From NCBI GenBank assembly GCA_037379345.1, contig CM074515.1, positions 36,957,743 through 37,021,742 of the forward strand: a stretch of 64,000 bases of DNA, given 5' to 3'. Each line of letters opens with the position of its first letter. Positions within the stretch are counted from its first letter, which is position 1. Origin of the DNA: Perna viridis (lineage: Eukaryota). Below are positions 21,341-21,419 of the stretch, one piece after another. The notes beneath the pieces were generated by a model that searched no databases, was not told the DNA's origin, and saw only the letters and a list, made by a program, of their open reading frames with translations. The translations under genes were made by a program, and so were the position numbers.

Positions 21341-21419
21341 GCCCCGTGCAGGTCCGGGTGTTAAAAGAATAAGCCTGCAGCAGCGCTAAGCTTGTCGTAA
21401 AAGGCGACTAAATAGTGCT
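21341..21419 (+). ncRNA. Predicted structured RNA head of the retroposon (pseudoknot plus interrupted stem-loop); candidate ribozyme or promoter module
   Basis: CCCG(21343-46)/CGGG(21355-58) stem whose loop TGCAGG can pair with CCTGCA(21374-79). Outer stem AGCGCTA(21382-88)/TAGTGCT(21413-19) encloses the GTCGT-AAAAG-GCGAC hairpin followed by TAAA. Function is not demonstrated. Confidence 0.5.

Follow-up and report, generated by a model that had tools for sequence, protein, structure and literature searches.

The 64,000-nucleotide stretch of Perna viridis DNA analyzed here (hereafter the window, 64 kb) carries three copies of a short retroposon, none of which encloses an open reading frame of 100 aa or more on the element strand. 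Copy 1 (21341-21859, plus strand, ~515 nt) is a full-length representative of a subfamily with an (ACAA)n tail, and its first 79 nt (21341-21419, plus strand) form a LINE-derived head module comprising a pseudoknot and a further hairpin (hairpin 2). Its left target site duplication (TSD), CTGAGCCCA (21332-21340, plus strand), is repeated letter for letter on the right (21860-21868, plus strand); (ACAA)CTGAGCCCA stands on both sides, and the TSD reaches up to 13 nt with the inclusion of the ACAA overlapping the tail repeat. Copy 2 (50048-49526, minus strand) is also full-length, belongs to an older subfamily with a (CAAT)n tail, displays 90% identity to copy 1 and is flanked by CTCCTTTGTATG. 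The third copy (22844-23236, plus strand; TSD CCCCAATAAA) is 5'-truncated, begins at element position 130 and has no head. The string GCCCCGTG is found twice in the window against an expectation of 0, and its G is the first base of both copies 1 and 2, in agreement with the claim of the earlier note on this DNA that the full-length copies share the same start G after unrelated TSDs. That note had also described a third copy with substitutions weakening the pseudoknot. Such a copy does exist, but it is the one at 50048: the copy at 22844-23236 begins only at position 130 and so does not include the module. The substitutions of copy 2 fall in both stems of the pseudoknot (S1 and S2, described below) and in hairpin 2: A10>T disrupts A10-U36 in S2, G16>A disrupts C4-G16 in S1, and C56>T disrupts the GUCG stem of the hairpin. 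Elsewhere in the window, two 240-nt direct repeats of 85% identity with a spacing of 325 nt occupy 40448-41012.

In a search of the whole genome (723 Mb in 46 contigs, ~32% G+C), copy 1 as query yielded at least 3,119 first-look candidates, and copy 2, representing the older subfamily, at least 7,384. The best 40 of the at least 3,119 copy 1 candidates are 92-100% identical to the query (39 of the 40 reach at least 97%), with almost every one beginning at position 1. The genome carries thousands of young copies, most of which start exactly at the first G of the head. Of 114 BLAST matches in the loci retrieved, 72 have their start at position 1 and 12 more at positions 2-5, and the TSDs of the genomic copies listed measure ~9-15 nt. 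Contigs from four public runs, which are of uncertain kind and inform on element boundaries rather than on RNA starts, accumulate loose ends with mutually unrelated flanks at 21340-21343. On the strength of the BLAST starts, the listed TSDs and the loose contig ends, the precise 5' end is confirmed as a genome-wide property of the family.

Toward the 3' end, the sense strand of copy 1 has a T10 run (21743-21752, plus strand), retained as T8 or more in both subfamilies, and a T4 run lies 3' of it and upstream of the tail, again in both. An AATATA hexamer is located upstream of the tail repeats. The contigs of the public runs display a second boundary of loose ends at 21794 (element position 454), their depth is greatest at 21792-21822 and over the last ~50 nt, and element positions 451-500 are the least diverged among the copies. 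The discrete boundary and the depth peak together indicate that the 3' tail region (21794-21859 with the (ACAA)n microsatellite, plus strand) is common to other elements. When differences between the two subfamilies were computed column by column, without building a consensus, nt 1-332 contained 1 differing position and nt 333-455 about 17. As the subfamilies are nearly identical over nt 1-332, copies within this genome yield no covariation for the head. Older, diverged subfamilies were also considered as a source of covariation, and the 74%-identical copy in locus L065 proved to be a single decayed copy. The CpG positions 16, 44, 56 and 93 (window 21356, 21384, 21396 and 21433) are mutated, G>A or C>T, in 5-9 copies each and are the most-mutated positions of the head among 82 copies, after the subfamily-diagnostic sites and position 60, a pattern compatible with methylation of the copies in the germline.

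Relationship of the head to LINE 5' ends

The same genome contains an abundant LINE, of which we examined seven copies (L065-L071). Its full-length representative (L067:164-6239, 6.08 kb) is flanked by TSDs and terminates in a (CAAT)n tail; the 1247-aa ORF2 combines APE-type endonuclease, reverse transcriptase and RNase H domains. A search with this ORF2 recovered 366 relatives in public assemblies, and for ten of these the encoding contigs were analyzed. Six LINE families were found to have a homolog of the SINE head upstream of ORF1, namely those of L077, L078, L079, L080/L081, L088 and L084. L078 begins with GCCCCGTG, as does the SINE. L080 and L081 belong to one family, and their flanks are unrelated up to the first C of the C-run; hence, the module lies at the terminus of the LINE. 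A Smith-Waterman alignment of the head with L077 scores 57, compared to a mean of 30.2 (sd 4.8, maximum 50) for shuffled sequences. A hidden Markov model built from four foreign LINE heads only has just two matches in the window, at 21342-21417 (E 8.6e-7) and 50047-49973 (E 6.4e-5), with model positions 2-75 aligning to 21342-21417; homology past nt ~76 is not significant with this profile. The bounds drawn by an independent, LINE-only profile are almost equal to 21341-21419, which bears out the earlier delimitation of these 79 nt as a discrete module. The related LINEs, which include an RNase H domain, are I/Nimb-like in their domains. We conclude from sequence homology that the head descends from the very beginning of the 5' UTR in a LINE of this I/Nimb-like type.

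Overall alignments of the head with the 5' UTR of the abundant own-genome LINE were matched by 104/300 and 34-193/1000 shuffles and were set aside; only the second module of the 5' UTR appears to be common to the two. Further hairpins of the SINE (86-92/96-102, 104-109/114-119 and 123-126/135-138; 21420-21480, plus strand) are a possible counterpart of this second LINE module. At the 3' end, the similarity between the (CAAT)n LINE and the SINE is at most weak (2/300 shuffles attain the score). No partner LINE of the SINE was found among the loci examined, and loci with tail-only matches, considered as candidates for it, proved to be truncated SINEs. A foreign LINE 3' end (L082:2600-2665), terminating in ...CGTCGGTAAACAC(AAAC)n, is similar to the SINE tail.

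Several of these sequences are filed under bacterial names. A species-genome scan recovered more ORF2 relatives on contigs labelled as bivalve symbionts (Solemya, Thiodiazotropha and others), which are presumably host DNA. Full LINEs of this animal clade were observed on contigs filed as bacterial or as metagenome-assembled genomes, comprising L088 (NZ_JRAA01000003.1: 514965-530606), L084, L085, L087 and L089-L092; the filings include Solemya gill symbionts, Thiodiazotropha, Sulfurovum, Chloroflexota and Thiodubiliella, and one of the LINEs lies inside a 537-kb scaffold. Most likely, these represent host DNA in symbiont assemblies. A metagenome pattern scan returned one chance match and one near-identical SINE on a bacterial contig (L072:5735-6113; OGYZ01005649.1, 6.1 kb), where nt 1-378 of the SINE, 97% identical, are joined exactly at nt 1 to sequence whose 2 kb upstream of the join have no match in the genome of the window. 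This contig carries Firmicutes-type genes (ribosomal protein S6, SSB, MatE and SpoVT), and the join is probably a chimeric assembly, though it is peculiar that the junction falls on nt 1.

A Pol III head is the defining feature of SINEs. An ordinary head of this kind, descended from some small RNA such as tRNA, 5S or 7SL that has since diverged, would suit the element in so far as its length, TSDs and copy number are those of a typical SINE. ARAGORN detected no tRNA in the window, and neither Rfam nor ARAGORN provided anything in favor of a tRNA or 7SL origin. A 5S origin had been entertained on account of the motifs GCTAAGC and TAGTGC, spotted by eye; alignments to the 5S rRNA of the same genome were matched by 486/500 and 464/500 shuffles. 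The 5S rRNA genes themselves, bivalve-like by eye, form a tandem array of at least 47 copies (G000:C9:35826632-35982375; 109.6-113 bits). By eye, there are no A and B boxes in register. Pol III transcription would normally stop at T-runs such as the T10, and both this run and the T4 run lie upstream of the tail. T-runs followed by C or CT have been discussed as prone to read-through by Pol III in mollusc SINEs (PMC4758252). Nevertheless, taken with the positive homology to the ends of LINE 5' UTRs, these observations have already largely refuted a Pol III head, which we regard as barely tenable.

To our knowledge, SINEs with a LINE-derived 5' head are a little-studied class known from a single paper. 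That study described LP-SINEs in gastropods and bivalves, and 520-bp pectinoid SINEs, in which the initial ~68-70 nt correspond by homology to the very beginning of the 5' UTR in Nimb LINEs and in one RTE element (Matetovici 2016, PMC4758252). A promoter role of this head was proposed there, without being tested, and an analogy to Pr77/L1TcRz was drawn (PMC4758252). The present element is about 515 nt long, has no ORF, is flanked by TSDs of 9-15 nt and ends in an (ACAA)n or (CAAT)n tail; its first ~70 nt are homologous to the 5' UTR end of LINEs, and it has no tRNA, 5S or 7SL head. It is thus an LP-SINE, a new member from another genome, assigned on the published description of the class, of which Nimb-17_LMi, I-3_DR, RTE-9_CPB, Lsa_2 and Sgl_LP supply the reference heads.

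Fold of the head and its conservation

The earlier note had proposed that the 79 nt fold into an H-type pseudoknot and an interrupted stem capped by GUCG/CGAC, and every proposed stem was recovered. In stem S1 (21341-21359, plus strand), nt 1-4 (21341-21344) pair with nt 16-19 (21356-21359) through the wobble G1-U19 and the pairs C2-G18, C3-G17 and C4-G16; with 4 bp including one G-U, it is the weakest S1 of the head set. In stem S2 (21347-21379, plus strand), nt 7-15 (21347-21355) pair with nt 32-39 (21372-21379), with U13 bulged. The 3' strands of S1 and S2 are separated by an A-rich loop with the motif AGAAU (21360-21371, plus strand). Hairpin 2 (21382-21419, plus strand) consists of an outer stem 42-48/73-79 and the inner stem GUCG/CGAC (54-57/65-68) closing a UAAAAGG loop. 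At nt 32 (window 21372), the window copy and 5/81 other copies have A, and 75/82 copies have G; the A loses one S2 pair (C15-G32) and may be the mark of a young sub-subfamily. The folding energy of the 79 nt is unremarkable (z = -1.2). A pseudoknot anchored at the 5' end is rare in dinucleotide shuffles, being matched in 12-24/1000 for the SINE and in 4-59/1000 for three LINE heads; for the L084 head, 118/1000 shuffles attain it, and for the L088 head the scripted optimum is a non-homologous pairing, the homologous pairing having been set by hand. A closing stem 1-5/94-98, which appears in the single-sequence minimum free energy (MFE) structure, was rejected as not conserved, because the distal G-run is missing from the LINE heads.

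The complete heads, including those of related LINEs from other bivalve-associated samples, all share a single H-type pseudoknot anchored at the 5' end, in which the C-rich 5' end pairs from nt 1 with a G-run. The 5' strand of S2 lies between the strands of S1, S2 has 6-8 bp, the position of the bulge is constant, and the loop comprises 8-12 nt and is A-rich, with AGAAU in 5/6 of the complete-pseudoknot heads and AAUAAAAU in L084. While G11G12/C34C35 is invariant across the lineages, pair 10/36 is A-U, C-G or G-C depending on the lineage, at pair 6/17 two lineages have C-G and two have G-C, and pairs 9/37, 14/33 and 15/32 swap as well. Five of the eight S2 pairs have changed on both sides, with 87-89% of the alignment cells paired. 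In alignment A2, 84.7% of the cells are paired, six pairs have changed on both sides, and the covariation is 0.361 versus 0.175 in shuffled alignments, 0/500 of which reach it; controls with the pairing slid along the alignment attain at most 59.7% paired cells and a covariation of at most 0.156. Alignment A5, which was fitted to a covariance model and is therefore biased towards that model, includes L088, absent from model building, and gives 84.1% paired cells, six two-sided pairs and a covariation of 0.348 versus 0.196 (1/500 shuffles), with slid controls at no more than 56.6% and 0.167. The covariation set consists of six or seven lineages, two of its rows being decayed SINE copies, and L077 is without the 5' strand of S1. 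A MAFFT alignment of seven short heads (A4) has the loop out of register and was left out of these counts. When applied to 151 kb, the covariance model matched the untrained L088 head as the sole extra hit. RNAalifold on its own predicts S2 and the GUCG/CGAC hairpin, and the inner stem of hairpin 2 is kept in the LINE heads, with the variant GUGG/CCAC in L080. The pseudoknot, whose covariation is attained by 0-1/500 shuffles, and the GUCG/CGAC hairpin are thus both conserved with compensatory changes.

Internal promoters within the first 30-80 nt are a feature of the I, jockey, F and L1Tc elements, and the module could accordingly act as an internal Pol II promoter at the DNA level only, the RNA structure being incidental. 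The published proposal for LP-SINE heads is of this kind (PMC4758252). However, the helix sequences change between lineages with the pairing retained (pairs 10/36, 9/37, 14/33, 15/32 and 6/17), and invariance is confined to short motifs, namely AGAAU and G11G12/C34C35; hence, a promoter with no role for the RNA appears quite unlikely. As the letters of the helices vary while pairing is kept, selection has acted on RNA pairing rather than on a DNA motif, and, as judged from these compensatory changes, the pseudoknot of the head is under selection as an RNA. A literature search retrieved no report of a conserved 5'-terminal pseudoknot of this kind, or of sister LINEs in which an HDV-like fold takes its place, and searches with strings from the element sequence had no matches. 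A pseudoknot at nt 1 that is conserved across LINE and SINE heads with compensatory changes therefore looks to be new.

HDV-like heads in sister LINEs and the question of cleavage

An HDV descriptor anchored at nt 1, demanding P1, P2, P3/L3 and a cytosine before the 3' strand of P2, is satisfied by the head of the abundant own-genome LINE (L067:164-310; 0/300 shuffles within 70 nt). P1 is formed by 1-7/30-36 and the long-range P2 by 8-16/138-146, L3 has the conserved CCUUGUCGUGG, and C134-U-A-A precedes the 3' strand of P2. The P2 helix is present in the MFE structures of both L067 and L074, and in P1 the pair U6-A31 is replaced by the compensatory G-C in L074 and L086. HDV-like starts were also observed in L068-L070, L074:3-150 and L086:152-300. 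On this structural modeling, the LINE starts with a convincing candidate for an HDV-like ribozyme. The HDV-like L067, L074 and L086 and the pseudoknot-type L079 all open with CCCCCUGUGG, the first ten bases of L079 and L067 being equal, and a terminal helix between a C-run and a G-run is common to both types of head. The presence of an HDV-like fold at the same site in a sister LINE would imply that RNA processing, and not only initiation, defines 5' ends in this clade, which counts against the promoter-based reading favored below.

The earlier note had suggested that the SINE module might itself be self-cleaving. On such a reading it would be an undescribed or much-reduced HDV-related ribozyme that cuts read-through Pol II transcripts just 5' of nt 1. 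The genome-wide precise 5' ends are in keeping with this. P1 of an HDV-like ribozyme runs from the first nucleotide after the cleavage site, and S1 starts at nt 1, with G1 engaged in a G-U wobble in the SINE and L078; the strand order S1-S2-S1'-S2' is that of P1 and P2 in HDV; and it is LINEs of the same clade, with the same CCCCCUGUGG, that have the full HDV-like fold at the same terminus. Nevertheless, the anchored descriptor finds no fold within 150 nt of the SINE head, and this, with the lack of any Rfam match, upholds the observation of the same note that the sequence fits neither the HDV order nor twister. Beyond this distance the descriptor yields only weak folds, and an HDV fold with P1 at 1-7/148-154 was rejected, as its P2 consists mostly of G-U pairs and 12/300 shuffles equal it. 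The gap between the 5' strand of S2 and the 3' strand of S1 is 0-3 nt in the complete heads, so that P3/L3, and with it P1.1, is absent. The equivalent of the J4/2 cytosine is missing from the loops of 4/6 complete heads (SINE, L078, L079 and L084), and the loop sequences GUUAAAAGAAUA, UGAGAGAAUA, UUAAAGAAUU and AAUAAAAUUU are free of C; in the L080 loop the sole C closes the loop, and the L088 loop is free of C only under the manual, homology-based pairing. Two defining HDV features are hence lacking, namely P3/L3, for which there is no space, and a cytosine conserved in the loop. Searches of 21200-22000 on both strands against Rfam with permissive filters (E<=10) recovered no twister, hatchet, pistol, hammerhead, HDV or other family; Rfam also missed the HDV-like head of L067, and therefore its silence on the SINE head weighs little. 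Self-cleavage of the head is thus unsupported by the descriptor and Rfam searches, and a ribozyme of this type seems to us unlikely.

The end might also be set by nucleases, if the pseudoknot stalled a 5'-3' exonuclease in the manner of an xrRNA or guided RNase P on the stacked S1 and S2. The knot is compact and G+C-rich and begins at nt 1 in every lineage, its conserved A-rich loop would suit minor-groove triples, and a stack of S1 on S2 would amount to 11-14 bp. Against this, Rfam provides no likeness to the known xrRNA classes, and the end coincides here with the first pair, whereas xrRNAs normally leave a few nt 5' of the structure; we consider such a role distinctly improbable. A wider formulation would hold that the pseudoknot is a new 5'-end-forming RNA of I/Nimb-like LINEs and SINEs, be it a minimal HDV relative without the canonical cytosine or a stop or cut site for a nuclease at nt 1. 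We rate this as rather unlikely. If it were true, the HDV-like heads (L067, L074 and L086) and the simple pseudoknot would be interconvertible solutions to one task.

Interpretation and comparison with known systems

We favor, with a probability of roughly 0.6, the reading that the head is the 5'-terminal cis-acting module of a LINE, combining a promoter with a protective or recognition pseudoknot, that was captured by an LP-type SINE. Its homology to LINE 5' ends, its position at nt 1, the precise ends of the copies and the covariation of the pseudoknot are the observations from which it proceeds, and from them we infer promoter activity, protection or protein binding, and an absence of self-cleavage. 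The DNA copy of the head would carry the internal Pol II start signal of the LINE, such that transcripts would begin at the first base; against this, by eye the start of the element shows no Inr- or DPE-like motif. In these transcripts, the terminal pseudoknot with its A-rich loop would hide the 5' end and would act as the cis element required there by the LINE machinery. This pseudoknot step would in turn yield full-length cDNA copies that all start at the same G.

With a covarying RNA pseudoknot at nt 1 of the borrowed head, what was a LINE promoter becomes a defined RNA element with stems that can be mutated, and the HDV-like head of the sister LINE offers a natural positive control for cleavage assays. 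These findings bear on the means by which non-LTR elements lacking a recognized promoter delimit and shield their 5' ends, on the capture by SINEs of LINE functions beyond the 3' tail, and on the origin or decay of HDV-like ribozymes.

The 5' pseudoknot of R2 binds the protein of the element, and viral xrRNAs block 5'-3' decay and thereby set a precise 5' end. The head resembles these in having a conserved 5'-proximal pseudoknot, a likeness that is a functional analogy only. The HDV-like ribozymes of R2, RTE, Baggins and the R2 SIDEs form a terminal nested pseudoknot with P1 from nt 1 and are retained in deleted non-autonomous derivatives. The own-genome LINE (L067:164-310) fits this pattern, and the SINE head has only helices like P1 and P2 and does not satisfy the descriptor. 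With the LP-SINEs, the present family shares the status of short mollusc retroposons with TSDs, tandem-repeat tails preceded by AATATA and a head that is derived from Nimb/I (in one case RTE) LINEs and not from tRNA (PMC4758252). It differs in that the published account, which does not list this family or genome, proposes a promoter without a pseudoknot or covariation; the term 'pseudoknot' does not occur in its text, which refers to secondary structure in connection with the V domain. The trypanosome counterpart, L1TcRz, is an HDV-like ribozyme with a catalytic cytosine, unlike the SINE head, which has neither P3/L3 nor that cytosine. Nevertheless, Pr77/L1TcRz, as found in L1Tc, ingi, NARTc and RIME, is likewise a module of ~77 nt at nt 1 that is shared by autonomous and non-autonomous elements and defines their 5' end, and in both cases promoter and RNA function would overlap in one sequence.
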